Shown here in pieces: positions 1 through 59,042 of a DNA stretch of 64,000 nucleotides (position 1 is the stretch's first letter; each line of letters opens with the position of its first letter). Where the stretch lies: contig OZ176051.1 of assembly GCA_964247055.1 (NCBI GenBank), positions 5,394,001 through 5,458,000 on the forward strand, given 5' to 3'. Made by a program: the position numbers and the translations under genes. A model generated the notes under the pieces. That model did no database searches, was not told the origin of the DNA, and saw only the letters and a list, made by a program, of their open reading frames with translations. This stretch comes from Paragordius varius (taxonomy: Eukaryota; Animalia; Nematomorpha).

Positions 1-3000
1 TCTGAGTTACTACTTGTGGGATTATTGGGTATAGATTTACGTATCTTTTCGTGGTTTGTTCTTTTGTTGCTCTCAATCACATCAATGGAAGCTGATTTTT
101 GTTTGTATGATTTATGTCCAGGGTATTGTTTTGTTTTGCCGTCACAAGACTCGCTCTTTTCTGGAGTTTGTTGTTCTCCTTTTGCTTTAGTGTTTTTAGA
201 TGTGTCAGCTGTTGATTGAGCAATCCCACTATTATTGAAAATGTTATAATAATATGATGGTTTATGTACATGTTCTAACGGCAGATGGTGATGATAAATA
301 TTTGATACACGATGTTCTAAAGGCAATTTTTCACTTCCAAAACGATTATCAGTAGTTGTTGGGTTAGAAGAAAAGTGCATAGTTGCATTTCCCATCAAAG
401 GGTGAGGCAGGTATGGGATAGCTGGATTTATGTCAAACAAGGCATCCCTGTTTTGTTGAACGGTCGGACAACAAATGGGATAGTTTAGGGTAAGTAAATC
501 TAAAACCAAGGAGAAACGAGTTATATATTGAATAACCATTATAGACAGCCATATTATCGGCATTATAGGGTGGAAACATAGAAAAAATGTAGGGCATATT
601 AATTTTTGTTATTTTTGCTTAAAATCGTCCCATACTCCTCTATGGAAGCGAGACATGGCCGATGACAGATTCAATCGCGAAAAACCTAATGAATAGAAAA
701 GCGGATGCTAAATTTATTCCAACCCAATAACTCAAATATGCATCTACTGTACCAAATCGAACTATTAAATATTATTAACAGAAAAAATAGGCTTAGATAT
801 ATCGGACACATCAAGAGTGCTCCAGAACAATGGACAAACAAAATTTTATCCTACATCCAGAAGATAACAATTGTAGAGGTAGACCAAAATTGAACTGGGA
901 AAAAACAATAAATAATAATTTAAGCGTTGTTGCCAACATTAATGATAACACCTGGCAAGATCAATATTACAGACAGCTTCTATACGAATACAATGGCTAG
1001 CCATTACACAAAGACGATATATCATCACATAAAAACGAGGCAAATTTTTTAGCAATAGTTTTGATTATTTCAAAACTATATGATGAATTATATACATGCC
1101 AATTGTAAGAAATTTATAGACTTTATATCCGAAAATCGATGATAAACAGAGAAAGAACTGTGTATCAAAATATTTAAATCATGGTTAAGAATCAAAACTT
1201 AAAAATTATTTTATCATCGAATTAAATGTGTGTAAACACAGATTTTAAACTGGCGCTAAAATAATTTTCAATTGCCACTTGCTCAGAATTCATTAAAAAA
1301 TTTCCTTTCTTCAAAAATAAAAATCATATTTAGTAATTTTGGCACAAAACAAAATAACAAACTTTACCATTTTCAAAATTAATTATACCGTTATTAACAC
1401 AAAAAATAAATTATATCATTATAAAATTCCTAAAAAATTAAAAATATGTATAAATTGATCATAAACATTCAATATTTTTTGAAATGATCATTTGATTACC
1501 GAATCCCCAAATTTACAAAGACAACTTTCATTAATATTCATAAAAAACTTTGGAAATGTGCCTATATGTGTGCCCTAATTAAAAACTTTTAAAATTCAAA
1601 AAACTTATGAAACACTTTATCGGGTAAAAATCATGCTATTATAAAGTTTACTAACTTGTTTTGAGCAAATATTGTTCAAGATTATGCCAAAGGGTTAATT
1701 CACACCCCATTTTCCCGACCGTGCCATCATCAACTAAAAGGAAATAGCCATGATGACTATTCAGCGCAAATGTGTTGGGTGAATGAGGCATTATCGAATA
1801 ATATTGCACAGTTTTCTATCATACCAAATAACATATGAATGGAAACATGCATAAATTTTTAAGTTAATTTATAATTATTAGTGTTTTGGATTTATTAATT
1901 ATTAAATCGAGATTATATTGATTTAGAATTTGTCTGCCAAAAAATATATAAAATAAGGATAATTAATGATAAATCAAAATATATTAAAGATAATATAAAA
2001 AAACATATTTAATATTAAAATTTTAATTAATATTTTATTAACGTGAAAAGGGCAGCCAAAATTTTTGTAGTGCACACATATTTATATACGTTTCAATTTT
2101 AAAGCGTTGAGGGTATTTATATATATATTTGCAAAATATAAAAAAATTAAAAATTAGAAGTAACATTTTAATAGAAAATGTAATAAAATCAAAGAAAAAA
2201 TAAATTTATTAATAAAATTACATCAAAGCCAATAAGTTCATCCCTATTTTGAACCATACCCCAAGGAGCTATGCCAATCGTCACAATGTTATTTCGATTT
2301 TTGTGTGGTAAGCCATCTAATGCATGTCCCACATACTTTACGTAACCTAAAACATATTTAATTAATTCTTTTTTTGAAAAAGTATAGAAAAAATCAATCT
2401 TTGAATTGTGAACTCTAACTTTTAAAAAAACAAAATTAGTGTAACTCCCAATATATGTAATATGAGCTTACATAAAAAAATTAAATATTCGAAAATATGG
2501 ACTCATAAAAACAATTTATTAGCCAATTTATTTAGCGAAGAAAAGCGTTTTAGAAAGCCCGGGAAAATTAACTAATATAACAATCGTTTTAAAAACCGGA
2601 ATAGCAATAAATTAATGAATTATTTTTTGTTTTAAGCAAATTTTTGAGATTATAAAAGCTGATTTTAATTTTTTTGAAAGCATTAATATTTTTACAAGAT
2701 TTATACGATTTGTTATGTGAACCGAAATCACAACCCTTCGACGAAAAAAATAAACCGGTGCCTTTTTTTGGGAATCCATAATTTACAAAAATAAATTCAT
2801 AAAATCTTTGATAATTCTTTATCAATTTTTTTAAATAAGTATATCCAATCAGGCAAGAATTAGAAAAAAATTGTTATATTATGTCTGAATTTTACGGTCT
2901 TATGTATAAAATCTAATAAATTATTTATGAATGCCCATATACATTTCGAATGCGCGCGTAGCCATTTGTGTTGGACACGCCTGATCTTAACGTTTGTTAA

Positions 3001-5064
3001 ACTGATTTAAAAAAATCCGAATTAAATCATTTAAGTAGGGAGATATTTTACGTATTTATTTTAAATCTCTTTAACAAGCTTCAGAACAAATATTCCACAA
3101 TCCGTAAAAATCTTTAAGAAATCGATTTATATAATTGGCAATAAATTTAATTTTTCACCATATAGATAGATATTTTATAAAAATAAAAACCAAACCTGTA
3201 TTAAGTCCATGAGTAAGGATCCATGTAACCGTTGTATTTGCCGCAAGAACAAGCCCATGTTGAAATTCGGCATTAATTTTGGGATTCAACTCAAAATTAT
3301 ACAATGAACCATGAATTGAGATGAGTATTTTGGGTAAATCAAGACCCCAGTGTGCAATAAGGAGTTGTAAAATAGCATCAGGTGGTGTATCAAACGATAA
3401 TCGAATGTACTATACGATAAATATACGGTAAAAACGTGATTAAAAACATTTTTTTTAAAAAAATAAACATTAATTTACTACATATATTTAATTTGAAACA
3501 TTAGCAAATTAATTTCCTATTTAACCGAAAACGATATAAAATTAATAAAATCATGATATAAAATAAAGTTTTTTTATTAAAAAAATATTTATGTTAGTTA
3601 CATATTATTAGCATAATTATTATAAATAATGCCAAACAATTTTTTAACTAAAATTAGGTATCTAGAATGTATATATTTATAAAGGGTCGGTTGATATACC
3701 ATTTACAATTCTAATTCACCCTCGAATAATTCAAATTCATTCTTGAACAATTCAAATTCACCCTAAAAATAAATTATATGATATATCTTTATGGTTTAGT
3801 TTATTATTTTTTCAGTATAATTTAATTTTAAATTTTAAATGTATAAAAAAAATGTAGGTAATTTTTAATCTCAAAAAACACATAATTTATTTTAGGGTGA
3901 ATTTGAATTGTTTAAGGGTGAATTTTAAGTGTTAATAGTATATTCAATTTGTCATATGTTTTCAGAGAAGGTGTTTTAAATTAAAAACTTTACAAAATTA
4001 TATTATCCGTATATGATATCTAATTACAAACGTGTAGTATCATATATAATAAGTGTATATATTTTTCAATATCCAATTCAATAAAATTATATATATTCCT
4101 AGTAATATAATTTCAAATTATCCATTGTATACATTTTAAATTAAATTTTGATATATTTTGAGAAAAGAGGAACATTTTGAATTTATTGGATTTTGGGCTA
4201 TAAATCACGCAAAGATTTTTTAATAAAAGGAGAATGACAACTTAATTTTTAACAATAAATTAGAAGCTATAAATTATACAGGTAAAATTTTACAAAAAAT
4301 ACGATTTCACAAACATTTAATAGTGCAAAATTACTAAATCCAAATGTAACCAGTTAAAAATTTACATATTACACAACTCATTTGCAATTATGTGGCAATG
4401 CTTGTTTTAAAAATATATATAGCCTAAGGTTAAATATATTAATAATATCCGATTAATTGCAAATTTTCGATTAATTTGAGCCAAAAATAGAGAAATTGAG
4501 AAAATATTTACCTGAGAGAAATATTGATGTGAAATGCCTTGAAATTCGATAATCCCCATAGCATTTGTAGGTTCTAACATTGTATGACATAAAACATCCC
4601 AATTTTCGATATGTGATTCAGCTATTTCGTGTTAAAAATTTAAAGGTACCTAAGTTTTCAATAGTGGAGACATAGGTAGGTAAACCACCTAATCCATCAT
4701 CTCTTGTGTTAATGGAATCAATATAGCTGTTTTCTCCTTGTTCTTGATTGAGTTGGTATAAATTATTTTCTAAATAATACAGGTGTCCATATATCTCTTG
4801 TTTTGAATTGTTAAAAGCTTCAATCACATAGCTAGTGTGACTATATAAGCTTTGACCACATCCACATAATCTAATATATTAATATAATTTAACCGATCCG
4901 AGGGATCAACAGTTAAGGGGTAAGAAGATGGTATGAACTTATTACAGATCCGTTTTTTAAAAACAGATTCAATCCATCGACATTTTATCTAAAATAAAAT
5001 CAAAGTTTACAATTCCGATAGAGCTTAGACGCTTTCTGCTGCTGTATGATATTTTTGGGATCAT
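1..5064 (-). CDS. TRPM: TRPM-family cation channel (TRPM1/3/6/7-like N-terminal MHR region), 5' part; gene continues beyond the left edge
   Basis: Exons 5064-5011, 4988-4894, 4870-4650, 4621-4512, 3409-3196, 2346-2222, 1815-1656 and 499-<1, all GT-AG and phase-compatible. Spliced product: [18 protein letters not shown]|[24 protein letters not shown]|[11 protein letters not shown]...|[36 protein letters not shown]|[61 protein letters not shown]|[31 protein letters not shown]|..[22 protein letters not shown]. This matches the TRPM motifs SWIE..F.KREC, PTDAFGTIEFQG, LPKLLISVHGG, IGIAPWG and HFILADNGT.GK.G.E. The ATG at 5064 is tentative because it follows an AG. Confidence 0.93.
640..1010 (+). 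mobile_element. Decayed 3' fragment of an RTE-like LINE inside a TRPM intron
   Basis: [10 protein letters not shown] and, in another frame, [12 protein letters not shown] resemble the RLRWFGHV...RGRPK.RW.D.I C-terminus of RTE ORFs (compare 58658-58999). Stops and frameshifts are present. Confidence 0.6.
3695..3942. mobile_element. Foldback-type MITE, copy 1 (in TRPM intron 4)
   Basis: Begins TATACCATTTACAATTC. The inverted arms are built from ~21-bp subrepeats (TTCACCCTyrAACAATTCAAA) around an AT-rich core shared with four other copies. Confidence 0.75.
4622..4649 (-). other. 28-nt micro-intron (TRPM intron 3; an alternative upstream donor would give 67 nt)
   Basis: GTACCTTTAAATTTTTAACACGAAATAG, phase 1. 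The unspliced frame ends in TGA at 4620-4618 and the acceptor restores the W..HT..PT frame. Confidence 0.6.
4871..4893 (-). other. 23-nt micro-intron (TRPM intron 2)
   Basis: GTTAAATTATATTAATATATTAG, phase 2. Removal joins ..DPSDR|LCGCGQ..H (TRPM DPHR-CCCGR..H); retention frameshifts. Confidence 0.9.
4989..5010 (-). other. 22-nt spliceosomal micro-intron (TRPM intron 1)
   Basis: GTAAACTTTGATTTTATTTTAG, phase 0. Retention shifts the frame to a TGA before the conserved [10 protein letters not shown] motif. Confidence 0.75.
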
Positions 5065-5162
5065 CTTAATTTCTTCATGTTACAACCAGTCTAATTTACT
5101 CATACGCAAAAACAGCTATGTATAAAAATGCATATCTTGTATAAATTTTTATCGCAAAAATT
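5065..5162. promoter_or_regulatory. 98-bp interval between divergent TRPM and CAP start codons (candidate bidirectional promoter)
   Basis: The inferred ATGs are at 5064 (-) and 5163 (+). A TATAAAAA lies at about 5121. Position only, no transcript data. Confidence 0.35.
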
Positions 5163-7863
5163 ATGTTTTTTAATAATGTTGTTTCTGCTTTATTAAAATT
5201 AATCTACACTCAACCTATAGTAAAATAAAAAATTAACTTAAGATAATTTGTCCAAAAAATTATTCGCTTAAATATTCATGTGTACATCAAATGAGTTCTC
5301 ATCGGTCGAATTCAATATTATACATGCATAACCAAATAAGAAGTTCAGTAAACCCTCCATCGGGTGATATGTTGGAGTTAGTATGGTTATTGTAATAATT
5401 TAGATTTGGGACCATGGAGGTGAGATGGCAGCTATGTCACTTGTTAGTCAATGTGATATCAAAAAAGATTATGCGATAAATTGGAATAGTAATAAAATTT
5501 TTGTTTTATTCATATTTGAATATAAATATAACTATTTAATTAATAATAAACCGTGGATACAATACCTTTCAGTCCTCCGCTTCAAATTTGGGTTTTTGAG
5601 GCCCCCAGACCTCTTTAAAATCAATATTTCTTGACACTAATTAACATTGCAGAAGTTTGCTTATATATAATTTTAAACCGCAGTATAAAAAGATTCATTT
5701 AAAAAAATGATATTATTTATGGATAAACCTCAAAAAAATCAACGTGTCCATTACCTAAATACAAAAATGATGCAAAATAACCTCTTTTTTATTGATATTG
5801 TTCAGTGTTATTTAGATAAATTCTTTAATTTTAGCGTTAGATTAAATAAACACGATATTTGCAAAATGTGGAGTGGCGTAGAAGCAGTTTGAAAAGGAGC
5901 TTATTTCAAAACTATATTATTTATGGATTATTTATATTATAAAATTTGAATATTGTATTAGCGATTTAAATATAGGATAGCGGTGAAAAGTTTAGGATGA
6001 GAATTTGTTAACAATTATGCATCGAAACGTGCGCCTTAAAGCTGAAAGCAAATTTTTTGATTAGGTCTAATACCTTAAATACTTTTTGAAATATTAAGTA
6101 ACCCTTCAGATATTAAACTACCCTTAAAGGTAGAAGGTTAACATTAAATTATGCATATGTTGAGGTACATGAATAAGTATTAAATTGATTACATATCATC
6201 TTTTCGGTGAGGTTTATGACAAAACATTTTTTAAAAAAAAATATTATTTTTTTCACAAATACGACATATTTTTACAAATATTAGAGCCTTTAGACCAAAT
6301 ATTTTTGACATAATCGCAACGTAGTGCTGATAAGTACGCTTACTTACATTAAAATGAAGGATCATTATTATCAGCGGTTTGAAACATCTTTTTTAATCTT
6401 AAAAATGTCCTAAAATATTTAGGCTATTAATTTTTCGATTCCACATAAACTACCCCATATTTTATTAACAGATTTAAACCTGGTTTTTATAATATGTTTG
6501 GATCTGTTATTATAATTAACATAAAGAAATATATACATTATATAAATAAAACAAAAAACATGAATATATTGTATTGGGTGTTTATAATAATAGCTAACGA
6601 AATAGGAGGACAAAATATATATGTATCAGACCTAAGCTTAAAATATCCTAATTGGGGAGAAGCTATTGGCGAATGGACAGATACCCATATATTAATACAA
6701 ATGAACCGATATCAACAAGATGATGAGTATTCGCAGGTATGCATTTCAACAAATTATAAATATTCTATTATACCCTATAATAGAGTATGTTTTTCATGCC
6801 CAGATTAGGTGTTATAATTTTCTTACGGATAACCTTTCATCTGATCTCAATAAATATAAAAGAATTATAGTATTTAGTTATTTCAAAAAAAGTTTTATAA
6901 TTAAAAGGTAAACACTCTTCTACTGCTGACAATGATTTAAAAGTTATGCATATACGGGGTTTGGCCAAATCCTACGGACGCCTTAACCATGTAGATTGTA
7001 ATAAAAATTATTCATAAAACTTGTGACTAAAAAGTTATTAGATTAATAAATCATTAGAGTTATGAGTAATATATTTTTAATTAATGACAGTCTTATTTAA
7101 CAATGCAAATTTTATTTTACATAAAGTACCATGATAAATTTGGAAATGAATAACTCTTATTTCGCATGTTGGAAAATTATTTCTAATGTCCTTAACACTC
7201 CGTGTTTTAATACTTTATTAGAGTTAATAATATCATATTGTTTTATATCTAATTTAAATAGTTTTGGTGATGGTAAATTGTGTAAAAAATGTTTGTTTTG
7301 TTTTTTCGTGTTTTAGCTTCCATGAATTAGCCCTAATACAATATGATCCAATAAATTTTTATGTTTTTCCAAAATAAAATTATAACTTGGGTGTCTTTTT
7401 TTTACTTGTTGTTTACACCTAACGCATAAAACAAACCTCTCTAGATAAGTTGGAATTTTTTTGCAATTTTTCAAAATGAAGTAATTTAAATATAACTACA
7501 TAATTATCTATAGATCTATTCTAAATTTGTTTTTAAGCTTAGAGGGTAATTTTGCACATATATCAATATCCCAATAGTCACACGTATTTTTTTATGAAAG
7601 GTAGTGTGGAGTCGAACAAAATCTATAGGCTGTGCTTCAGCTTATTGTCCTGCAAAGGAAAAGAAGGCATTTGGCCCTTTCATATTTTATGCTTGCAATT
7701 ATTACCCCAGGTATATGTGCGTAATTTTGTTTTTAGAGGCAATATACCCGGTCAACTGCCTTATAAAATAGCCAAAAAACAAAGCTGTTCCAAATGCGCC
7801 AAAGGTGGATTGTGCCTCACAAAAGGACCTTTTAGCGGAAAACTCTATAAACGATGCGGTTAA
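5163..7863 (+). CDS. CAP/SCP-TAPS (venom allergen/CRISP-like) secreted protein
   Basis: Exons 5163-5219, 5243-5380, 5404-5488, 6594(or 6606)-6736, 7601-7710 and 7737-7863. Product: ..IICPKNYSLKYSCVH..SILYMHNQIRSSVNPPSGDMLEL|IWDHGGEMAAMSLVSQC..|GQNIYVS..NWGEAIGEWTDT..DEYSQ|VVWSRTKSIGCASAYCPA..FIFYACNYYPR|GNIPGQLPYK..CSKC..LC. This contains HN..RS.V.P.A.NM, W.D, GEN-like, YTQ-VVW...IGC and CNY.P.GN CAP signatures. The start codon is tentative. Confidence 0.92.
5220..5242 (+). other. 23-nt micro-intron (CAP intron 1)
   Basis: GTAAAATAAAAAATTAACTTAAG, phase 0, with an in-frame TAA if retained. It links an ATG-initiated hydrophobic leader to the CAP body. Confidence 0.65.
5381..5403 (+). other. 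23-nt micro-intron (CAP intron 2)
   Basis: GTATGGTTATTGTAATAATTTAG, phase 0, with an in-frame TAA if retained. Removal gives PPSGDMLEL|IWD (canonical PPASNMLKM-xWD). Confidence 0.93.
7711..7736 (+). other. 26-nt micro-intron (CAP last intron)
   Basis: GTATATGTGCGTAATTTTGTTTTTAG, phase 2. Only its removal reconstitutes the CNYYPR|GN signature. Confidence 0.94.
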
Positions 7864-10800
7864 CTATTTTAATTTGTGTTTTTATTGCACATTAATCGAT
7901 TTGCGAGGATATAAACTTTTTAAGTGTTTAATAGCCTTGCAAAAAATACAAAATAATCGAAAAACTATTAATAGCACATACACCTTTTAATCTTATCGAT
8001 TTTAATGAAGCATTTCAAATAAATAGTAACAATCTATTTTGAAATTGAGTAAAATTGATAAATGTATAGATTTCATTTTATTTTTTGATAACCACATAAC
8101 AAGGGTATAATCAATAAAAATGTAAAAAATGTTATTAATCCTTTAATATAGTTCAATTAATATAATAATTTCTATTCTTTGGGCCAGCTATGTTAGAATA
8201 TAATTTAAATCTTTACAGAGTGACACTTTTTTCGTTAACAGTCGCATTTTTTAAACCCAGTTGAATTTAATTCGGAAACATCAACAAAACTTCCAAATAT
8301 CGCAAAAATTATATATAGCACACCCAAACAGTGTTTAATTTAAATTAAAAAACTATATTAGCTGCTTTCTAAATTTAGGTCAATCTTGATTTAAGTGTTA
8401 CAATATTTTCCTCTCGTAGTTATGTGTGTTGTTTTAAGTCGAGTTCGCTTTTAGATATTTTAACACCGTAAACCGTTGGTTATTACATAATATTTGAATA
8501 TGTTATTTATTTTACCCATCTAATTTGAAGCCTAACATTTTTTCATGGATATGGTGTCTGACTAAATGATCAAAATATTTCGAGTAAATAGGGTCTATTT
8601 TCTTTAATTATGGCGTGTGTGTGCCTAATTTTACTTATCCCATCACTCCGTTCAGTATCGTCCGTCTGCGCCAGACTTATGAATTATCCGTTTTGCCCAG
8701 CCAAAAGTGAAAAAAATGGGTATGAATCCTGGTCTATAAAAATTGAACGCGTTTTTTAGTTTTTTTCGAAAGCTCTCACTTTTACTAAGGCGTTTTTACT
8801 ATTAAGTTCGTCGTACTAATTTTATATCTAGAAAGTGTGTTCCTTTCAAAGTTAGTAATTTCCTTAAAATCTTATGACTTTTGTTTTTTTTCAATTGGTT
8901 GGATACTGTATGTTCCGCCTCTATTAAGCCTATTCAACATGGTACCATATTACGATTATATTATTGGTGACCAAGATATATTCAATTGAAAATCCAAAGT
9001 TATTAATTGTTAGCTCAGCAATTTTTAGGTTCATTTTTTGGGAGGATTAGACTCCTTCATAATACTTTTTACATTTAATTAATACGGCGAATCTTATATC
9101 TTTATCATACTGCTTTTTTATTTTTTTGCAAGTAGTTTTTAAGTTTGTTGAAAATCTCCCATTTAATAATTTTATAATTTGTGTATGAATAATTGTGGGA
9201 AGGGTCCCCATAGTTTGTCCTTATTTTATAAATAAATTTTCTAAATCAGGGCAGCACGCACAACTTGTGATCCCGTTGTTTTTATAATCCATGGCATTTT
9301 TGTTTGAAGTGCTACAACATCCCTAACACACGTCCTTGTTCTGTGAGCAGCTTTAATTATTTTATGTCTTATTTTGTACGATGATATAATTTTATCAAAA
9401 TGCGATGCTGATTCTCTCGTTTTTTACATTTGGCTTATACTAAAAAATGGTTAGTGATTTTTTCCATTTCAATGACCATGTGACGTTTTCCACGTGTTTG
9501 TTAAACGATATCTGTTTTTAAAAAAAATCTCCAAATAATTGCCATGAGTTCATCGCATTAGGCATTGTAGTAGGAAGTGATTTTGTTATTTAAAATAATT
9601 TAAGGCTTTAATTTTTGAAAATTTTACAAATCATCACGGGAAAGCTTTGCAGAGTTAAAAATGGATTCTACTTACTTTTCATTGCATTTTTTTCTGCGAG
9701 CCGTAATAGTTAAAAATGTCTCAATTTTTTCAGGACGTTGAAGAAATTTAAACGGATATTCCAAATTAATTATTAACATTTGGGTAAGCAGCAAAAAAAA
9801 TATGCAAAAATAGCCAGATTTTCTAAGTTTTACGGTTTTTGAAGATATGTTTTGAAAGGGCTTTTTAATTTTTCTAATAGGCTTGCTTCTGGTTTTTTAA
9901 ATTTTGTTACCGTTAGATTTATTAAATAAATTTATATAAATTGATGCTTTTAAAATATTTAGGTATTAGAAACTTTGTATAAATACTAAAAATTGCATTG
10001 TGATTATGTTATGTCATTTATTCCATCAAATTCATCCGGCAGTTTACAAGATGATTTTGGTGCTTATACAATACAAATGATCAATTATTGTTAGGAAGTA
10101 GTCTAATATGTAGCCACATCCCAAAAAATTTAAAAGATTTATTATAAATGCTCTAACCTTTAGATATGTTTTGTCACAACATCTTTCACAATTGCGTGTA
10201 TTTAGCCACCACTTGTCGATCACAGGTTTTTGTAGATGGAAACTATATAATGATAGGAAATGCTTGTCCCACGTTTTGTAAAAGTATCTGCAAAAAGTGA
10301 TCGTTTAATCAAATCCATAAATATTTATATTCACAATCAAATGCAAATATGACATATCTCATCCAAATTAATTTAGTGCTTAGAATATATATATTACGCT
10401 AATTATTTTCGTATTAACTCCACATTTTTTAATATTCAAACTAAAAGATAAGACACCTTGAGCAAAGTATTCCAAAAAAATTATAATTTATTTGTTGGTA
10501 AATCACAAAATTCTACATATTACACGTATAAATTAAAACATTAATCATTTTTATTATTGGCTAAATCAATATGTTTATACATTAAATAACTTATTTGCCA
10601 TGTATTATATCAAGATCGCAGCTACTTACAACATGATGCATATATTTATCGATGGTTGAATTAATTTTTGTATGTATTTATTAAACATAAATATGTTACC
10701 TAAAGTATCTATCACAAAATTGCATAATTTAAGCTTAAAGAGTTAGGGGATGAAATCAATCAATTCAAAAAGGACTCGACAATGCTCGGAGCTTTAAATA

Positions 10801-11415
10801 GATTATAAACGGTAAACTGCTTTCACTATTTTTTTGAAGGCTTATACCTTGACATAGGCTGGGCTAGTCAGAGAAAATAAATGACGAGTGCCTTAAATTT
10901 CGGCGATAAAAAGTAAAATATGGGAATAATTTAGATTTTATTAAATGGCACCATTCTCATTTTGATTCAAGGCCATGATTTTTATGTGAAGGCGTTTTTT
11001 ACACACGCCTGGACTGAACCTTATTAATTAAGAAAAAGGCCAGCTATTGTAACTTTTGAGAGATATTCTCAAATTTACATCTTTTGTGTTCATCGGAATA
11101 TTATTCAAATGCACGCTTATAAAAGCTTATATTTTGTAAAAAAATTTACTGAGTGCGTCGCCATAGATGTTAAAAATAAATATTTTAAAGGGTTATTATA
11201 CCATTTTTATACTACCTCAAAATAGTATAAAGTACACCTCGATTTTGCAAACATTAAATTTTAAAAATTTTGATAAAAATACAATTTAACAAAAAATGTT
11301 TTTTAACTTGTAAAATTATTGTTATAAAGAAAACAATCATCGTAGACAAATATATCATAAAATTTTTTGGTTCGGAAGGACCGTTTATATTAGAATTTTT
11401 ATTCCGATCATTATA

Positions 11416-12673
11416 TCCTATATATTTATATGGAAAAGGCTGGCTTTGTCATCTGTTTCCGGAAAACCGGTAGACCCATTCAAATTCAAATGTCAAAAAA
11501 ATATTATCATTGATGAATGCCCCGACAATAGCTTCGTCCTTTTTTGAATTAGGCTCCCAGTTCAGGCGCACCACGTGTAAAAAGCGGTTTTTTAAAACAA
11601 CTCCAGAAAAATCGTGTCTTTGAGACAATTTTCCGGAAAACGTGCTGTACCTTTCGATTTCAAATATGATTATTTTTACTTTTTTTCGATTGCGCCGAAC
11701 ATAGTCGGCTTTTAATTTAGGCTCTCTTTTTACCCGTTCCCCCGTAATATGCCATTTTTTAAAAAAAAAACTAAAAATTTTTTTTCCCAGGGTATGAGAC
11801 CGTTAAAATTCATTGAGGATTCGATTTATTTTCTGTTAAAAGGCAAAAAAAATTGTCTTGTGTTTTTTAAATATTGGCTGCTGGGTAAACAGATAGCCGC
11901 TAAAACTTCGCCACTATATCGAAATTGCGGAGTTTTAGAACTAATCTACAGAAAATTTATGAAGCCATATGAGCTCATTAAAAGCTCGAAATACTACCCG
12001 TAACTAAAAAATTAATGTCGGGTTTTTTTATTAGCCGTTAATTTGGGGCTTTTATGCCCCAAAACCCTCATATAACGATTATTTAGTGTTAAGGTATTTC
12101 GTATAACTCATGAGACGATAGTATCAAAGAGGATTCCAAATATTTGCCCTATAAAGGCAAAGAATTATTCAGCGCTTTTTCCATATAGGTCTATGGGTGG
12201 GGTCTACCAGCTTAAAACCGAGACGCCATACAAAATAGGCGTAGATTTGGTGCTAATTTTCAAAATAATTAAGCCATACGAGTTCATTTAGACACAAATC
12301 TGGGAAATTTGTATAATATCAATCGTTCCTTTAAAAAGGGACCACAAATTACTTTTTATATCCCTTGATCCCAGGTGTATAAACACAGTTTAAAATTAGA
12401 ACTTTTAACCATGATTTCGTAAAACGAAAATTTTAAAATAAATCCAATAGTAGTTGAATATTAACTTTAATAAGGGACAGATTAAATATGGCTAATTTCG
12501 AGTAAACAATATTTCAGCCTATGCAAAAACCCGTAAAAGAATAATGAAAGACATTCTTTTTATTAAACATGTTTATTATTATTTTTTATCTCCAATAACT
12601 CTATTTATTGCAAATTATTAAGAATATTTGTCGGTGAGACTACGCCACGCCGAAGCGTGACAGGGCCTGCTAG
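11416..12673 (+). mobile_element. Non-autonomous Helitron-like element
   Basis: Host A|TCCTATATATTTATATGGAAAA at the 5' end. The 3' end has hairpin CACGC-CGAA-GCGTG (12646-12659), a 10-nt spacer, then CTAG|T (12670-12674). The body is homologous to the 60.5-63.4 kb repeat array. Confidence 0.65.
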
Positions 12674-12829
12674 TATCTTGTATATTACTATGAATCAATG
12701 TTATAGATATTTATAAAAAAAGTAGATTTTTTTGTCAATCTCACAAAACCGATATAATCCTGATAAATATTATCAACAAAATTTCGAAAAGTTATTTCGA
12801 AAAAACTATTATTTTTCTTTTATATTTGT

Positions 12830-12896
12830 TGGGGTCGTTAGGAAATCAGCAATCATAAATGGGGTCGGGACTACAAATGTTTAAGAAGCCCTGTCC
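12830..12896 (-). mobile_element. Terminal fragment of a hAT-like MITE (same family as 31354-31734)
   Basis: GTTGGGGTCGTT..ATCATAAATGGGGTCGGG..GTTTAAGAAGCCCTG is the reverse complement of the 31354-31420 end. Confidence 0.55.
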
Positions 12897-13278
12897 TAGA
12901 TATTTAAAAATTTATCGCGAAATATGGTGATTTTTGCGTTTATGAAACTAGTTTATTTTGATAGTGCGAAAAATTTAGGACTTTAGGGATCCGTATATAA
13001 AAATAGGAATTTTATATGAAGATCGTTTTCTTATTTATATACAGTTAAGGATATATTAAGTGATATATTTTAGAATCCACTAAGCTTCGGTCAAAAAAAT
13101 TAGATTTAAAAATGTGCCCAGATTTTGCCATTTTTTTATATCACTCGGAAGGGCAGAAAACAAAAACGCCATGATAATCCGGATACATTTTTTATTTGAA
13201 TATATGTTTGCTCTTCATCAGGATATATTTATGGACATTACATATTTATATATAGTATGCATTCTAAATAAGGCTTAT

Positions 13279-13366
13279 TTCACACTATAGTTGAGCAATT
13301 TGCAAACAGTAGTTTTTTCTTATTCCTTACAGTATTGTGTTGCAAATTGCCCAAGTATAGTGTGAA
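13279..13366. repeat. 27-bp inverted repeat (mini-MITE) about 180 bp upstream of WDR70
   Basis: TTCACACTATAGTTGAGCAATTTGCAA ... TTGCAAATTGCCCAAGTATAGTGTGAA, with 2 mismatches and a 34-nt unpaired spacer. Confidence 0.7.
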
Positions 13367-13547
13367 TATGCAACCATCAAAATGAATATTGTAAATATAT
13401 ATAATAGTTGTGTAAAGATAGAATTTAATTGATATGTGTATATATATAGGTGTTTGTACCTATCATTCATACAAAAAAAATTTCGTCAAACAACATAAAA
13501 TATTTTAAATAATTTATATGATTTGCACACATTCAATTTGATACGGT

Positions 13548-16500
13548 ATGGAAAAAAAAGCAAAAACTTTCGATATTGAGACTATGATTAGTTTGGCAAA
13601 AGAGAAAAATATTAGTTCAGGAAAACGATTGTATGAAGGTTAATAATAATAATTTTATTACCAGAGTCATTTAAGAAATTAGAAATTGACGTCAGTAAAG
13701 AAATCGATAAAGAGCAAGAATCTTCGGATGATACTGATTCAGAAACAGAAGTAGAAATTCCTGAAACCAAATCTAACATTGAGGTTCCTAAAAGTCGTCA
13801 TATATCTCTTGAACATAGTTACAAAACGGTATAATACATATAATAGTATAGATCACTGCTTTAGCTATTGATCAAAATGGCCATCGATTAATAAGTGGGT
13901 GCATGGGATATGAAATTAAACTTTGGGATTTTCATGGCATGGATTCAGAATTACAACCTTTTAGGGTTTTTGATGAGATGGTTGGCAAGTATTTAATTAT
14001 ATATCTTTGCATACGACAGTATTAAAATAACACTCATAAATTTTTAAATATTAAGATATTTCAAAGACTATGTAAAGAGCAAAAACATAAATATATTAAA
14101 TGGACTGTTCCGTTTATAATAAAACTAATAACGATCTGGCTATCATGCATGTGTAAGTTATTGTAGCCGTTTTATATTAAAATGAGTTTAATTTACATTA
14201 CGCTATCTACAGTGAATGGTTAAATTTTTTGTTGCATTAACTTTTTTAATAAGCATAATTATTTTACTAAATACTTTAGCAATCAAATAACTTCGTTGAG
14301 CTTTAATTGTCGGGGCGAACAAGTCCTTATTACAAGTGGTTCATCTCAACCCAAAATAATTGATAGGGAAGGACATGCCATTAAAACTTGCATAAAAGGC
14401 GACCAATACATTGTTGATACCATAAACACTTTGGTTAGTTTGTTTGCTAAATTTTATTTTATTTCTCTTTTTTTATTAACTATAAATATTATTTTTTTTT
14501 ATTTTTCCCTTTAAAAAAATGTTATATCATTAATTTTATATGAAATTTAAAAATAGGGTCATATAGCATTTGTTAATGAAGGATGTTGGCACCCTAGAAA
14601 CCGGGATGAGTTTATGACATGTTCAAATGATGGGTATATAAATTGTGTTTTTTAGTTTTTCTCATATTTTTCTTTCTGATATTTAATTTAATTTAAAAAT
14701 TTTTAAAATCGGGTTATTTTTAATATCATTTTAATATTAAACAAATAAATTAAATTTTTAGGTTAAGATATTATGAAATTTTGTTACTCAGTTATTTTAA
14801 TTAATAATCAAAAATTTAATGTTTTACTATTTATGTAGAACTGTCAGAACTTGGAATGTTGAAACATGCGATAAAAAATACCATGAAATTATAAAAATTA
14901 AAGGGAAAAATGGTGCCAGAGTTATACCTACCGGATGCGCTTATGACGGGTATATATAAATTTATTTTAAATTATTTAAAACTTTTTTCTGCTATTGAAA
15001 TTCGAAGTTCCTTTTGCCTTGTTAGCAATGTGATTATATTATGTTTTAATCTAAACTTTAAATTATGGAAACAAAACGTTTAATATTGATTATTTTTTTC
15101 ACAAAGAAATATATTTTATAAAGCTTTTGAAAAATTTATATATATATATATATATATATTATCATTTTGGCTTCCAAATTGTTTCACAACATAATTATAT
15201 AGCCATTTTCAAAAAAATAAGTGTGAAAAAATATGTTTTTCTATCTAAAAAATTTTTTATTTTATCTTTTTTATAATTTTGTTTTTTCACACAAATTTAA
15301 TTTTTATTTTTAGGAGTGGTAATTTATTGACAGCATACTCTTCTGATGGTTCTTTACAAATTTGGGATCGACGGAAAAAATTGGTAAAAAAATTAATTTT
15401 CTTTTTCATTCAACAGTTTAGATTTTGATTGTTAAAAGCATAAAATTGGGCGCATATGAATGCAGACATTAACGGTCATAAAGCAGTCGTTTATTATTAT
15501 AAATGCAAAATAGGTTATAATTTAACAAAAACATATTAAATATTTTCGGTTAGTTATAATATAAACATTGTGACAATTGATTGATTTGAAAAATATTTAA
15601 AGATTTTACATAAAATTTGTTTTGTCCATAACTTTATATTAATTTTTGTCTCTTAAAGTGGTAAACCCCTATTAATGTAATATTTAAATGGCTATTTTTA
15701 TTTAAAAAATGCTTAAAAACCGATTGGGTACAATACCAATTATATCTAAAATAATATCTGATTTATGATGCTTTATCAGAAAGTGTATCATAATAATATA
15801 GTTTAATCGCAAATGTTACCATGAAAATTGTAACATTCATAAATGTTTTACTTGTATTCTTATGATTTATATTATATATTATTAATATTTTTAAATAAAA
15901 GTTATTTTGTTTTACCTGTTAAAGTAACATATTTTTCAAAAATCATAACAAGTTTTTTAGGAAAAAATATTATAAAATTACTCAATAACTATAATTATAT
16001 ATCTAAAACATTTAGGTAAATGCCATATTCGTTGTACGCAATGGACATGAGTTAGGTAGTGAAGGGACTCTTACTTACGCTTATGATAATATGTGTATTG
16101 CAACACGTACAACTGATGGTACACTTAAACTTTGGGATATTAGAACACTTTCCGGAAATAACTCAAACTCATCATCTCAAACGAGTAGCAGCATTAATAA
16201 TAATTCGAGGGATTACCGCCATAACAAATCGATAAAGGAATGGCATGGATTATATAATCGATATGCTATGTAAGTTTTTATTATGAAATTAGATAGTATA
16301 CCAAGTTTGATGGGGTAAAAAAAGTTTTTCTCATATATTTATGTGGAATTAAATCTCTTATTTGTATAAATGAAAAAAATCACAAAAAATTAAAAGTAAC
16401 AAATATTAACACCACCAGTATATTGGTCGGTATGAAAATGTAAAAATTTCCGAATATATTTGCAAGATCTATATGGACAAATTCAAAAAAGTCATATTAT

Positions 16501-17665
16501 GCGATTAATAGGCATTGTATATAATTTAAATTTAAAAAAATTCATTTACATAAAATGACGTAAAAAATGGATTTACTCACAGTATACTTAAAGAACAAGA
16601 TTTGACGTTTGTATTTTTTAGGACTTGAATACACGCTGAGGGAGTTTGTTATTTTACTGAAATATATTTTTGAAATCCTCATCAAACCCCATTGCCCCAT
16701 TATTTTCAATATTAGTTAAACTCAGTATAATTTTGTTTATAATCATTTCCAACTTTTAAATAAACGAAGAATAAGGAAAAAATGACAAAATAAGTCATTG
16801 GTAATGAGCTTATTAAAACTCTCATCTATAAGATAAACCATATAATATTTTAATTTTTTACAATTTGTAAAACATTTCAATCCAAGTAATATTTATGCTT
16901 TTCGATACATTATGCATTTTTCTACCGAATGTCTATTTTAACGTTTTATAATAATTTATATATTGTTTTCAAACATTATGTTTGATTTAATTTACAGGAC
17001 AAATTGTGTATTTTCACCTAACGATCGATTAATTTGTACACCCACATCTCAAAACATCAAAGCCAACATAAGTGGAAAATTGGTATTTATGGATCGACTC
17101 ACTGGCACGCCAGATAATTCAATTAATAATAATGCAATCAAAAAAACCACTAAAAATAATGAAAACAATATTACGAATGATAATGGAAATAAAAATTTGG
17201 ATATATTGGAGGAAATAGCTCTAACACCTCTTGATAGTCAAATTAATCCAGAAAATCAAAAAAATAAATTTACAAACGAAAAATATGAGGTATTTTTAAC
17301 AGTTACCAATTATTTTATCAAAAAAAACTTTTTAGTTTTTTAATCTTTAAGGCATTTTTTCTAAATCTTAATGTAAATCATTATTTATATTTGTGTATTT
17401 TGTGACTTTAATTTTTTAAATTTTTTACCTGTAGGAAAATGAAGTTGTAGGAGGTGTCCGTGTCCTTTGGCATCCAAAACTCAATCAAATCGCATTGGGT
17501 CAAACTGATGGCGTAGTTCAAGTCTATTTTGATAACAAAATTAGTCATAAGTATGTGTCTTTATTTATTAATATTAAGTTTTTTTTTTTGATAATTTTTT
17601 TAAAAGTTTTGGCAAGAATGTTTTTAATAGGTCCATTTTTTATTGTGTCACCATATTTTTTTGAT

Positions 17666-17709
<44 letters not shown>

Positions 17710-18733
17710 TATAATTACAAATATGTTTCAACAATAAAATTTTTTTTATTTAGACCACGACGTTTTATATAACAATTATATCTCTAATTTATATTAATTG
17801 CTTTAGTGGTGCGTTGCTGTGTGCCGATGTTCACCGAGTCCGTAGGCAAGATGTCTTTACGGATGAAAAACCTTATGCTTTTAATCCTGACATGTTACCA
17901 GATTACGATGACCACGATGCCGACGAATTGGTCGAATTGGAAAAACAATCGAGAACTATGAATCAAAGATCGTACAAACCTGAAATGCCTGTTACTGGCC
18001 CAGGTTTATTTCATACCTATCTTTTTTATTGGATTTGATTTAGCCTTTAAGCTTTGAGATATTGAGTAAAAAATTGTTGAAATTCGATTTTTTAACAAAC
18101 AATGATGTTTACTAGGTTTTGGTGAAAGTATAAAATTTAAATTATCAAAAAAATGTTTGAGAAAATGTTTTGTTTCAGTGTTTATCATCTTAACTAAAAA
18201 ATTTCTCCCTACTCTTGTATATTTAACCATTATTTTTGTAATGTAGTTCATAAATTTGAAACAACTCAGATTTATTTGTTTAGATTATATAGCATATACT
18301 ATCACTAAATTTTAATATCGTACCTTTTTTTATTTTAAAGATATCCTTAAATTTTTATATCATACCTTTTTTTTATTTTCCACGAAAACAATATAGGTAT
18401 TGGGGGTAGGATAGCTCCCATGGGTGGTACATTACACTCTTTCATAATCAAAAATTTGGCACTTGCTAAACCCGTTGATGATAAACAGAATCCACGTGAA
18501 GCACTTCTCAAACATGCAAAAGCCGCTTCCGAAAACCCATATTGGACTAAAGCTTATCAAAAGTATTAATTATTTATATTTTGCGCATTTTTTACCAAAT
18601 TATATCTGTTTGTTTTTTTATCTATTATAGAAATCAACCTAAACCCGTATTTGATGAAAATGCAAACATTGATGATATAATTATACCTTTGCATACGAAA
18701 GAAGACCATCCGAAAAGATTACGTTACAATTGA
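13548..18733 (+). CDS. WDR70: WD repeat-containing protein 70 (gastrulation defective-1 homolog)
   Basis: 13 exons: 13548-13638, 13665-13828, 13852-13988, 14280-14433, 14557-14633, 14839-14949, 15314-15383, 16016-16269, 16998-17289, 17435-17550, 17807-18003, 18397-18562 and 18631-18733. Motifs KKAKTFDIETM, LEHSYKT|ITALAID..RLISG..KLWDFHGMD, KIIDREG..CIKGDQYIVD, GH..WHPRNRDEFMTCSNDG, LWHPKLNQI, KPEMPVTGPG.GGRI...GGTLHSFIIKNLAL and NPREALLKHAKAASENPYW all match WDR70. Confidence 0.97.
13639..13664 (+). other. 26-nt micro-intron (WDR70 intron 1)
   Basis: GTTAATAATAATAATTTTATTACCAG, phase 1. Retention gives an immediate GGT TAA. Removal joins the KKAKTFD exon in frame to the acidic linker. Confidence 0.88.
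13829..13851 (+). other. 23-nt micro-intron (WDR70 intron 2)
   Basis: GTATAATACATATAATAGTATAG, phase 0. Retention gives GTA TAA. Removal gives LEHSYKT|ITALAID (human LKHGTKT-VSALGLD). The internal AG (18 nt) is out of frame. Confidence 0.95.
17669..17703. repeat. (TA)n microsatellite in a WDR70 intron
   Basis: Direct reading of an uninterrupted AT dinucleotide run. Confidence 0.95.
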
Positions 18734-18989
18734 ATTAAATTATATTGAATATACTATTTTATTTTCTTTAAATAAATGTGTTTACATGTCATAATTTCGT
18801 TAAAATTTAAAATTGAATAAACATGATAAATGTTATATGTTATATAAATAACCTTGATTTCAAAAATTTCAAATGCTGTGATGCGTTAAAAATGCTTTTT
18901 TACATTGCGAATGGATAAAATGACATAAATTTTTTATTATACTATTGAGCGACATATGGTATTGAATAATACTATAAATTACATTTTAT

Positions 18990-19480
18990 GTCTGTTGTAA
19001 CGCCAAAGAAACTAAAATTGGATTTCCTATCGATTTTATGTTTTGTGGCAATATTTTGCTCATTGAAAAGTCAGTTAGAACCAAATTTTAATTCTGTTAA
19101 CGGACAAAGGGTAAAACCCTGTGACGATGCAATATGTAATAAATTATTGTGCGGTCGATGTTATACCGATGCATTTGGCTACCTAACTTCCCAATGTAAG
19201 TCTTCTTTTATCCATTTTTAGAATTAATTGCATAAGTAATTTGTATACAAAAAAAGATTCTATTTTAACATTTCACCAATCCATTTTTTATCCAATATAA
19301 CGGGTATCATACCTGCAGATATTATAGTAGGTTTCTTGAATTCGTTGCGTTCAGCCCGATCGCTGTAGAAATAGCTCAATGTATAAAATAATATTCCTGC
19401 CTAAAATTAATGAGGAATTAGTCGGGAAATGTACATCTTTAAAAATAAAAATAGAAATCAGGCGCTTTTTATATAAGCCA
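18990..19480 (-). mobile_element. Highly decayed LINE apurinic-endonuclease fragment
   Basis: Stop-riddled minus-strand translation DVHFPTN..KPTIISAG..VILDKK..EDLHWEVR*PNAS..HIASSQGFTLC resembles the NVYAPN / TIIGGDFN..LD / DL.DVWR..NP / SRIDF.L APE motifs. Confidence 0.4.
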
Positions 19481-20537
19481 TCCTTTGAATTAACCACTTA
19501 TTATGATTTCGGTACGAATTATAACCAAATCAAAGGAAAACGCATCAAAGCATATTCTTATGGTATTACTAAATGTGCATATCATGATCAAGCGCTTTTT
19601 TGATTTTTTCCCACCCTAATATAATAGTCTCTCTTAAAAATATTTATAGGTCTTAAATTTCGTAAGTCGTAAAAAATTTCACCTATTATTAATTGAACAT
19701 TAAGCGTAATTTGTGGTTTTTAAGATATCATAAGTATATAAATTTTCATATAAATTGGTAAAATAAACCTTAGCATTAAACTGCGACCGATAAAACTCCG
19801 AATAAAAAAATGTAAATTAGTCTGATTTTTTTAAAATCCCATTTTTAATAATCGATTTACGTACATTTTTAATTTTTTAAATTTTAACCGCGATAATTAG
19901 TTTATATACGCATTTGACCTCTAAATTAACGCACAAAAGTCTCGATTACCCGTTAAAAATTTAAATACGGTCGAATTTTGAGATGAAAATAGTAGGAAAA
20001 AACACATAATTGCATTTTAATATATAAATAGAAGGAATATTTTAAATTTTGAATTAAACCGAAATCCGATTTTTATTTTAGATACTAGTTTGTATTAATT
20101 TTTAAGCTAAAACCTATGTTTTCCCCGACGCTAACTTATTATTGTTTTTTCACAAAGATTATGTTTATAATCCGTGTATAAAAATATATTACAAGATAAA
20201 TTGGTTATATAATTAATTCTTTTGTAGCATGGTCTTAGTTCAAAAATTAAAAAGTTAGTCAAACACCATCATATCTCACATTTATAGTTGTAACCAAACG
20301 GTTTCCTAATACCTTGTATATAATATCTTAAATCATCTCCTCCCCGTGTCAAAACTACCACTATGCCCTAGATATATTTCGTCAAAGATGGTGGTCTTCT
20401 TGTACCTTTGCATTAAATTTTTTGATCACATGGCGACCATCTTCACTTCTTTCGTATGTTGCATGTAAATGCTAGAATAAATTGGGAATAAAATTTTAGA
20501 CCAAATGGATCTGGTTTTATCTCAAGACGTTGCGTAA

Positions 20538-44786: not shown

Positions 44787-44790
<4 letters not shown>

Positions 44791-44853
<63 letters not shown>
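44791..44853. repeat. (TA)n microsatellite, longest in the window
   Basis: Direct reading. Confidence 0.95.
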
Positions 44854-58800: not shown

Positions 58801-59042
58801 ATGGTTCGGACATGTTGAAAGAAGAGATAATAATTACATTGATAAAAAGATTGAAGATTATATTGTGAAAGGCAAGAGGGGAAAAGGGCGCCCTAAAACG
58901 CGATGGATAGATACAGTTAAGAGGGACATGGCAAAACTAAACCTAAAACGCGAGGACGCCACAGACAGGGTTCTATGGCGAAATAGTTTACGGATATGAC
59001 TGCTCGAAAGAGTGATATCATATAATGTAATTATTATTATTA
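55835..59042 (+). mobile_element. Full-length (~3.2 kb) RTE-clade non-LTR retrotransposon, inactivated
   Basis: The endonuclease (INVGSL, IQETR, FCGDLNGHVG, NTFFTKRDSHLITYESG..QIDYILV) and RT (KAAGPDDI, IFKGKGD..CNNYRGIRL, QFGFIPGKST, DIEKAFD, YAEDL) are split by stops and frameshifts. The C-terminus has RLRWFGHV..RGRPK. The 3' tail is (TTA)n. The flanking direct repeat TTAAGAGAACTTG lies at 55822-55834 and 59043-59055. Confidence 0.92.

Follow-up and report, generated by a model that had tools for sequence, protein, structure and literature searches.

For animal introns shorter than 30 nt, a 2026 paper names the myxobolid Myxozoa and Dicyema as its sole examples (PMC13644364). The median intron is 22 bp in Thelohanellus kitauei and Myxobolus rasmusseni and 27 bp in Henneguya salminicola (PMC13644364). 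Myxobolid introns of ~22–27 nt have GT-AG ends, the 5' signal GTa and no polypyrimidine tract; a few A residues upstream of the AG form the presumed branch site, these animals have AT-rich genomes (GC is 29% in Henneguya) and the introns lie at conserved positions (PMC13644364). The micro-introns of 22–28 nt described here, from a horsehair worm, resemble them in these respects, with a branch site that is likewise presumed. They are also like those of Dicyema japonicum (Dicyemida), a parasitic animal for which the same source gives sub-30-nt GT-AG introns and reduced splice-site motifs (PMC13644364). Outside animals, Paramecium and other ciliates share the size range (~20–34 nt, and 15–16 nt in Stentor), the AT-richness and the GTA...AG pattern, and their intron lengths avoid multiples of 3 (PMC5014332, PMC13644364). 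None of the eight lengths found here is a multiple of 3, a count biased by ascertainment, since a reader notices micro-introns solely where the frame breaks. An earlier note on this DNA, made from the letters alone, had listed Paramecium, Stentor and the dicyemids, among others, as precedents; the myxobolid Myxozoa are missing from that list (PMC13644364).

The surroundings of the micro-introns are different in the present case. In myxobolids, which are Cnidaria and unrelated to the ecdysozoan lineage studied here, the short class is the genome median, whereas the three genes here also contain introns of hundreds of nt to >1 kb and their micro-introns are clustered among the first introns. The Dicyema genome is compact with short introns throughout, and the genome here is repeat-rich with two classes of intron length. 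Ciliates are unicellular, use another genetic code and have nearly all introns tiny, whereas long introns occur here in the same transcripts. An ultra-short class that forms the genome majority in a compact genome, a trait of myxobolids, Dicyema and Paramecium, does not hold in this window. A related layout is seen in Gordionus, also a nematomorph, in which UBA3 has a 5' cluster of 41, 41, 53 and 41 nt introns followed by kb-scale introns. Short introns toward the 5' end of the gene and long ones downstream are common to UBA3 and the genes described here, and in UBA3 this architecture is less extreme. Schistosoma mansoni, as Berriman et al. reportedly described in 2009, has an 'unusual intron size distribution' with short introns toward the gene 5' end. 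The short classes of Gordionus and Schistosoma are ~30–50 nt, no shorter than the usual lower limit in animals, while the mode here is 23 nt.

The window, the whole stretch of 64,000 nt of Paragordius varius DNA that was analysed, contains eight micro-introns in three genes, TRPM (three), CAP (three) and WDR70 (two), all with GT...AG ends (Table 1). The eight segments are very probably genuine U2-type GT-AG spliceosomal introns and would form a distinct ultra-short class in a nematomorph nuclear genome. The earlier note had proposed all eight, and each is confirmed in the sequence, with some coordinates taken over and others reconstructed; its claim that the frame needs each segment removed is borne out by open spliced frames in TRPM, CAP and WDR70 at all eight junctions. 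Its further claim, that such introns are spliced alongside long ones in an animal genome, is supported at the level of sequence by the Gordionus alignment, exon lengths and intron positions. The three genes have ~24 introns together, and in this small sample none is of 29 to ~67 nt; about two-thirds are of 68 nt to 1.1 kb. Micro-introns are found among the first introns of each gene, and ordinary introns of ~70 nt to >1 kb lie further downstream in the same transcripts. The long introns measure 1102, 849 and 406 nt in TRPM, ~1141–1147 and 864 nt in CAP, and 291 nt and then ~68–730 nt in WDR70, so that the previously proposed range of 51–1400 nt is about right. That the segments are cut out of the RNA is inferred, as are the choice of branch point and any alteration of the splicing machinery. 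WDR70 was absent from every RNA run searched, the single RNA-labelled run compared with 2100–8099 gave no match, and a search for transcript-derived proteins yielded none.

Table 1. Positions in the window of the three genes, the micro-introns and one ordinary intron.
Feature	Position	Strand	Description
TRPM channel gene, 5' part	1656..5064	-	ATG at 5064; seven exons; spliced N-terminus 326 aa
TRPM exons	5011-5064, 4894-4988, 4650-4870, 4512-4621, 3196-3409, 2222-2346, 1656-1815	-	
TRPM intron 1	4989..5010	-	22 nt, phase 0, GTAAAC...TTTTAG; sole GT-AG solution restoring the frame
TRPM intron 2	4871..4893	-	23 nt, phase 2, splits DPSD-R/LCGCGQ; alignment gap-free there
TRPM intron 3	4622..4649	-	28 nt, phase 1; sole GT-AG solution; no Gordionus counterpart
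TRPM intron 4	3410..4511	-	ordinary long intron, 1102 nt, GTAAAT...TATAG
CAP (CRISP/PR-1 superfamily) gene	5163..7863	+	six exons, 205-207 aa, ATG 5163 to stop 7861-7863
CAP intron 1	5220..5242	+	23 nt, phase 0, separates signal-peptide-like exon from exon 2
CAP intron 2	5381..5403	+	23 nt, phase 0, separates ...GDMLEL from IWDHGG...
CAP intron 5	7711..7736	+	26 nt, phase 2, splits CNYYP-R/GN motif; spliced frame reaches stop
WDR70 gene	13548..18733	+	~13 exons, read from frames; boundaries past intron 3 approximate
WDR70 intron 1	13639..13664	+	26 nt, phase 1; placed by frame logic alone
WDR70 intron 2	13829..13851	+	23 nt, phase 0, separates ...EHSYKT from ITALAIDQNG...

Intron position and phase were compared with an orthologue for TRPM only and in one species, Gordionus. 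The spliced TRPM N-terminus aligns with residues 8–234 of the Gordionus TRPM3-like protein with 49% identity (E 8e-72), and none of the three micro-intron junctions shows a gap. The exons in the window measure 54, 95, 221 + 110, 214, 125 and 160 nt, those of Gordionus 66, 95, 331, 214, 125 and 160 nt; apart from the first exon (54 versus 66 nt), the lengths are identical. The two exons flanking intron 3 add up to exactly the undivided 331-nt Gordionus exon. Intron 1 has the position and phase of the first Gordionus intron (390 nt, aa 22.0), intron 2 has those of a 13,953-nt Gordionus intron (aa 53.67), and the 95-nt exon between them is of equal length in both species. The position of the ordinary intron 4 is kept in Gordionus as well, by a 150-nt intron at aa 164.0. 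Exons 5 and 6 match the Pfam SLOG-in-TRPM domain with E values of 2.5e-23 and 1.5e-9, and exon 4 has a PDB match to TRPM7/TRPM3 and aligns with TRPM7 residues 73–104. The best relative is Gordionus, with 216 bits versus at most 120 bits for other phyla, and lineage-specific inserts are common to both nematomorph proteins. Together with a Maf bZIP gene, TRPM is one of two genes in the window that indicate a nematomorph.

CAP is arranged head-to-head with TRPM, with 98 nt between the two ATGs. Its exon 5 matches PF00188 (profile positions 90–117 of 117), and the best PDB match of exons 2 and 5 is snake CRISP 1rc9_A (residues 15–38 and 119–149). Exon 2 aligns with CRISP up to its penultimate residue, at the junction of intron 2; without splicing the frame stops after 4 codons, and the alternative GT-AG solutions of 44 and 56 nt would remove residues. 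CAP intron 1 is the sole GT-AG solution at a junction across which no homology is found; it is placed by frame logic alone, and the unspliced frame stops after 2 codons. CAP intron 5 has an alternative of 20 nt (7717–7736). In WDR70, exon 3 has human WDR70 (6zym_p, residues 185–223) as its best PDB match. The exon following intron 2 aligns with the human protein, from residue 185 on, starting at its own first residue, and the upstream frame, read through the donor, meets a stop after 1 codon. The least secure of the eight placements is that of WDR70 intron 1; it competes with GT-AG alternatives of 44 and 50 nt, and the homology searches gave nothing that spans the junction. Exon 1, if unspliced, stops 1 codon past the donor, and exon 2 has no ATG. 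For CAP introns 1 and 2 and both WDR70 introns, detected homology is missing on one or both sides; the ends of the alignments to human WDR70, snake CRISP and TRPM7 coincide with exon starts or ends.

The micro-introns keep little more of the splice-site consensus than GTa...AG and have practically no polypyrimidine tract. Six of them have A and two have T at position +3, the 3' end is TAG in six, AAG in one and CAG in one, and an extended agGTaagt-like 5' match is found in none of the eight. The branch-like motif and the AT-richness that the earlier note had described are both recovered, and both were compared with the 1,485 GT..AG 22–28-mers within the window. The motif T[AG]A[TC] (TRAY) is present in all eight micro-introns, with its A 6–12 nt from the 3' end, and in 25% of these background segments, a comparison that is partly post hoc because the motif definition followed the wording of the earlier note, and the sequence is also AT-rich. 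Internal GC is 12% in the micro-introns, 30% in the background segments and 34% in the flanking exons. The micro-introns would most likely be spliced by intron definition, with a minimal 5' signal (GTA or GTT) and a TRAY-like branch site as recognition cues; this branch site would lie just 11–18 nt past the 5' splice site, and recognition would proceed with hardly any polypyrimidine tract. A spliceosome with relaxed spacing between 5' splice site and branch point is a reasonable, putative reading of this geometry, and gene predictors may reasonably be expected to mis-annotate such genes.

Bare GT..AG pairs 22–28 nt apart are common, with 1,485 in the window, and a scan for segments joining open reading frames found GT..AG no more enriched than control dinucleotide pairs. 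Hundreds of cuts could conceivably restore the frame at each junction, and chance would therefore supply roughly one with GT-AG ends when cuts of as much as 60 nt are admitted. GT..AG pairs being so common, the case is based on homologous proteins, identical exon lengths and features peculiar to introns and not on the dinucleotides. The same numbers would suit decaying pseudogenes or chance insertions with coincidental GT..AG ends, a reading that is nevertheless very improbable: TRPM, CAP and WDR70 are open after removal with no other defects, and all eight segments are intron-like in composition and carry the branch motif. Frameshift indels of 1–2 nt compensated by removal of ~25 nt would leave gaps of 7–9 aa, and none is seen; nor would decay be expected to keep TRPM exon lengths equal to those of Gordionus to the nucleotide. 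Removal by a route other than the spliceosome, such as ciliate-like somatic DNA elimination or translational bypassing, has no positive point in its favor and hardly any probability. The segments end in GT...AG and not TA...TA, two of them occupy positions of ordinary introns in Gordionus, and the DNA contigs carry them, with no joint that skips them among those listed. Contigs of independent DNA runs are nearly identical to the window (contig X6, 4900–5027, spans TRPM intron 1), and among the matches listed they show no indels or joints at the six micro-introns within 2100–8099; an assembly artefact is therefore unlikely.

Two further readings accept the introns as real. Some boundaries may differ, with WDR70 intron 1 being 44 or 50 nt, CAP intron 5 20 nt and CAP intron 2 44 nt, and the micro-intron class would lose some of its stated uniformity. 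Five of the eight junctions do have GT-AG alternatives that restore the frame, and the WDR70 intron 1 junction lacks homology across it. We nevertheless consider such shifts unlikely, as most of the longer alternatives would remove residues aligned to homologues, the three TRPM introns are fixed by the exon-length identity with Gordionus, and the shortest solutions all have the TRAY motif and extreme AT content. Somewhat less probable still is inefficient or conditional splicing, in which many transcripts would keep their introns and be degraded or left untranslated, so that the introns would mainly throttle expression. Extremely short microsporidian introns behave in such a way, with a median splicing of ~25% (PMC13644364), and each of the eight, when retained, leads to a stop within 1–23 codons. 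WDR70, however, is conserved and present in human spliceosome structures, and any WDR70 protein needs both micro-introns out.

Genuine spliceosomal micro-introns, the preferred reading, would extend a short list. We found no literature report of sub-30-nt introns in horsehair worms, and since such animal introns are listed for myxobolids and Dicyema only, the nematomorph looks, from its sequence, like a third animal lineage. The chances are about even for a stronger proposal: sub-30-nt introns would have arisen independently in animals for the third time, and for the first time in Ecdysozoa, with a new architecture in which ~23-nt introns gather toward the 5' ends of genes and the genome is rich in repeats and has kb-scale introns as well. 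The 22- and 23-nt TRPM introns are orthologous to Gordionus introns of 390 nt and 14 kb, a contrast from which fast, position-specific miniaturisation would follow. If the proposal is true, miniaturisation is not a by-product of genome compaction, and a discrete ~23-nt class at gene 5' ends beside kb-scale introns is a new architecture. No intron of the orthologous Gordionus TRPM is shorter than 53 nt, and the class is therefore not necessarily phylum-wide.

The genome is not compact, as the window shows by its kb-scale introns, a LINE, repeats of high copy number and extended intergenic stretches. TRPM intron 4 itself contains a very high-copy repeat at ~3700–4100, with word depth reaching ~20,000 in DNA runs (3700–4099), in agreement with the repeat-rich, non-compact genome that had been proposed. 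Nematomorph genomes of 200–300 Mb are given in a preprint. Mitochondrial genes with coding palindromes are a nematomorph trait (PMC6649704). GC content is 27% in the window and 27.6% at the Gordionus TRPM locus, and a published value is 26.9%. For a Maf bZIP gene in the window, the single match found is from Gordionus, with 67% identity.

Eight GT...AG segments of 22–28 nt, assigned by the earlier note to a TRPM, a CAP-superfamily and a WDR70 gene, are all recovered at the same positions by direct reading and re-derivation of the frames. As had also been claimed, the segments must be removed for an open frame. None of the eight lengths is a multiple of three, and unspliced read-through reaches a stop in 1–23 codons at each segment, in a count for which the script chose the wrong frame at CAP intron 5. 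The SLOG domain of TRPM lies on two successive exons with adjoining Pfam profile positions (3–72 and 74–115), and CAP exon 5 matches the end of the CAP domain. In PDB searches, TRPM exon 4 matches TRPM7 residues 73–104, CAP exons 2 and 5 match residues 15–38 and 119–149 of one snake CRISP, and the WDR70 exon after the 23-nt segment matches human WDR70 residues 185–223, from exon residue 1. The spliced CAP product is a complete protein of 205–207 aa. Pfam and PDB returned no match for the short pieces TRPM exon 2, CAP exons 3 and 6, WDR70 exon 1 and WDR70 exon 2. The first introns of CAP and WDR70 could not be bridged by homology, and searches for a CAP homolog and for further nematomorph TRPM N-termini returned nothing useful. 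A 20-nt GT..AG candidate directly past TRPM exon 7 was rejected because it runs at once into a stop codon.

Gene starts, short GT...AG segments and longer introns of the three genes (window coordinates)
Feature	Position or length	Strand	Remark
TRPM gene	ATG 5064	-	Identity from Pfam SLOG domain, PDB and Gordionus alignment
TRPM segment, 22 nt	4989–5010	-	GT...AG
TRPM segment, 23 nt	4871–4893	-	GT...AG
TRPM segment, 28 nt	4622–4649	-	GT...AG
TRPM introns 3' of micro-introns	1102, 849, 406 nt	-	Frames re-derived
CAP-superfamily gene	ATG 5163	+	98 nt from TRPM start
CAP segment, 23 nt	5220–5242	+	
CAP segment, 23 nt	5381–5403	+	
CAP long introns, two	~1141–1147 nt and 864 nt	+	Between second and third micro-introns
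CAP segment, 26 nt	7711–7736	+	
WDR70 gene	ATG 13548	+	
WDR70 segment, 26 nt	13639–13664	+	
WDR70 segment, 23 nt	13829–13851	+	
WDR70 later introns	291 nt, then ~9 more of ~68–730 nt	+	

The terminal dinucleotides by themselves are no proof of splicing. The window has a GC content of 27% and holds 1,485 GT..AG pairs 22–28 nt apart. Hypothetical frame-restoring cuts, when counted, number in the hundreds per junction, so that about one GT–AG solution per junction is expected among cuts of up to 60 nt. Alternative GT–AG solutions, longer or shorter, are present at five of the eight junctions, including those of 44 and 50 nt for WDR70 intron 1. A GT–AG solution by itself is weak evidence and, the dinucleotides being uninformative, the case for micro-introns must rest elsewhere. 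In a scan for segments that join open reading frames, GT..AG was no more frequent than the seven dinucleotide pairs used as controls; chance open frames of 20–30 codons are too common at 27% GC for such a scan to have power, and its null result is no evidence against micro-introns.

The segments themselves show several intron-like features. The branch-like motif that the earlier note described is present, as T[AG]A[TC] with its A 6–12 nt before the 3' end, in all eight segments compared with 25% of background GT..AG segments, in a test that is partly post hoc. The A of the motif lies 11–18 nt past the 5' splice site. Internal GC is 12%, compared with 34% in the exons on either side and 30% in the background segments. 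The base at +3 is A in six segments and T in the other two; at -3, six segments have T.

The decisive evidence for these putative micro-introns is the sequence comparison with the nematomorph (horsehair worm) Gordionus. In an exhaustive profile search with the TRPM SLOG exon, one relative stands out, the TRPM3-like protein from Gordionus sp. m RMFG-2023 (69% identity). Residues 3–230 of the spliced TRPM N-terminus align to Gordionus residues 8–234 with 49% identity (E 8e-72), with lineage-specific inserts common to both proteins and no gaps at any of the three micro-intron junctions; for this N-terminus, scores in the next-best phyla are about half as high. Threading the Gordionus protein through the fetched locus DNA gives first exons of 66, 95, 331, 214, 125 and 160 nt, and those of the window gene are 54, 95, 221+110, 214, 125 and 160 nt. 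The 95-nt exon is flanked by the 22- and 23-nt segments in the window and by introns of 390 and 13,953 nt in Gordionus, with equal phases; the equal length and phases identify it as the same exon in both. On either side of the 28-nt segment, the window gene has exon halves of 221 and 110 nt, which add up exactly to the undivided 331-nt exon of Gordionus. Farther downstream, the long introns of TRPM occupy orthologous positions. The shortest introns of Gordionus TRPM are not below 53 nt.

A very unlikely alternative is that the reading frame is broken by mutation and the apparent introns are artificial repairs. A frameshifted pseudogene would not give exon lengths equal to the nucleotide, and a 'repair' of about 25 nt around an indel of 1–2 nt would leave gaps of 7–9 residues in the alignment, where none is seen. 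The earlier claim of genuine micro-introns beside long ones is thus backed by the alignment, the exon lengths and the shared positions and phases. On this comparison of sequences, micro-introns in a genome with ordinary long introns are very probably real.

The short introns are the first three introns of TRPM, the first two of WDR70, and the first two and the last of CAP. Among the approximately 24 introns of the three genes, none has a length between 29 and about 67 nt. In the UBA3 gene of Gordionus, a neighbour of TRPM (47446–52247, -, in the fetched DNA), the introns are at first 41, 41, 53 and 41 nt long and then kilobase-scale, a milder version of the 5' clustering in the window. From this run of short introns, a cluster at the 5' end seems to be common to both species, with the short class seemingly driven to ~23 nt in the window species. 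A mitochondrial ribosomal protein S30 (PDCD9) gene at 23545–27216 (-) has a long exon 1 and introns that look kilobase-scale. No micro-introns were seen in it, so 5' micro-introns are not in every gene.

Introns shorter than 30 nt were long held impossible in animals. A survey of 51 animal genomes found them in myxobolid Myxozoa and Dicyema japonicum only, and further lineages are expected (PMC13644364, September 2026). The introns of these two groups have the form GTa...AG with a few A residues upstream of the AG and without a pyrimidine tract (PMC13644364), and the window segments match this description. The window introns join this known kind, and what is unusual is the two length classes, the 5' bias, the repeat-rich genome and the long-intron orthologs. 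If true, Nematomorpha, a poorly studied phylum, would be a third animal lineage with sub-30-nt introns, in another superphylum than the known two. We found no literature on intron size in Nematomorpha; a 2023 Current Biology genome paper, which may have intron statistics, was outside the scope of the search, and neither the Gordionus genome preprint nor a comparative nematomorph-genome preprint mentions introns. GC content is 27.6% at the Gordionus TRPM locus and 26.93% in the published assembly (Gordionus genome preprint). Gordionus supplies the closest relative of the window's TRPM and the sole relative found of its Maf, two unrelated genes, and on these two genes ciliate, dicyemid, myxozoan and flatworm origins of the window were rejected. 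Protein identities of 49–69% imply another genus or a deeper divergence rather than Gordionus itself. The window's proteins were not found in the protein collection, so the genome probably has no public annotation. Coding palindromes in mitochondrial genes have been described as a nematomorph trait (PMC6649704).

Since introns of 23 nt and 1 kb share transcripts, intron miniaturisation appears separable from genome compaction. The spliceosome would have to cope with a spacing of ~11–18 nt between 5' splice site and branch as well as with normal introns, a plausible prediction; the earlier note had proposed a relaxed spacing. Such introns would offer a natural system for studying how recognition by U1 and by U2 can be accommodated on an RNA of this size, and the comparison with Gordionus supplies dated orthologous pairs of long and micro-introns, a rare resource. 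The predicted consequences for annotation are plausible as well. In many gene finders and RNA aligners, the minimum intron length is near or above these sizes: STAR takes gaps below 21 nt as deletions, and the minimum in AUGUSTUS is near 39 nt. With such limits, nematomorph gene sets and estimates of gene loss may be distorted.

Sequencing runs searched for these genes gave matches in DNA runs alone. An RNA-labelled run compared with the locus gave no match; such runs under the same species label are small (1–30 Mb). Contigs from the DNA runs confirm that the segments are truly present in the DNA. TRPM intron 1 is covered from end to end by a single contig, and none of the indels or joints listed for 2100–8099 falls at the other micro-introns of TRPM and CAP. 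Runs under four organism labels carry DNA almost identical to the window, with 0–1 differences per contig, and those labelled as three other organisms were too alike to serve for a cross-species test of selection. This could reflect a parasite inside sequenced hosts, differing specimen identification or cross-contamination.

TRPM (-) and CAP (+) lie head-to-head at 5064–5163, and the spacing of their start codons suggests a very short bidirectional promoter common to both; no CAP gene was found in the 10 kb upstream of Gordionus TRPM. TRPM intron 4 contains a very high-copy repeat at 3700–4100, with a word depth in DNA run X3 of ~13,000–20,000 against ~2–30 over the gene sequence at 4100–5500. 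From its many joints marked 'opposite strands', it may be a foldback or inverted-repeat element. A non-LTR retrotransposon at 56521–58996 (+) has open frames of 152, 511 and 126 aa and a reverse transcriptase domain (PF00078, E 3.5e-29), and may have been recently active. GC is 34–35% from this element to the window end. Repeats at 11250–12300 and 60200–63500 have alike open frames on both strands (e.g. ...GAFINDNIFLTFEFEWV..., ...GAFINDYIFLIFGFEWV...) and look like an unclassified dispersed family. Neither an Rfam search nor a tRNA scan gave any match in the window. Very long Asn/Ser-rich low-complexity coding exons are found at 39446–42163 (+), 46022–47074 (-) and 49851–50744 (-), the latter two with no Pfam domain. 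One such exon encodes a 906-aa single-exon large-Maf bZIP protein, whose sole relative found is in Gordionus, with conservation limited to the last ~115 residues. Microsatellites of TATATA type are common in introns and spacers (~15100–15200, 17640–17700, 44770–44850 and elsewhere) and read as IYIYIY runs in translation.
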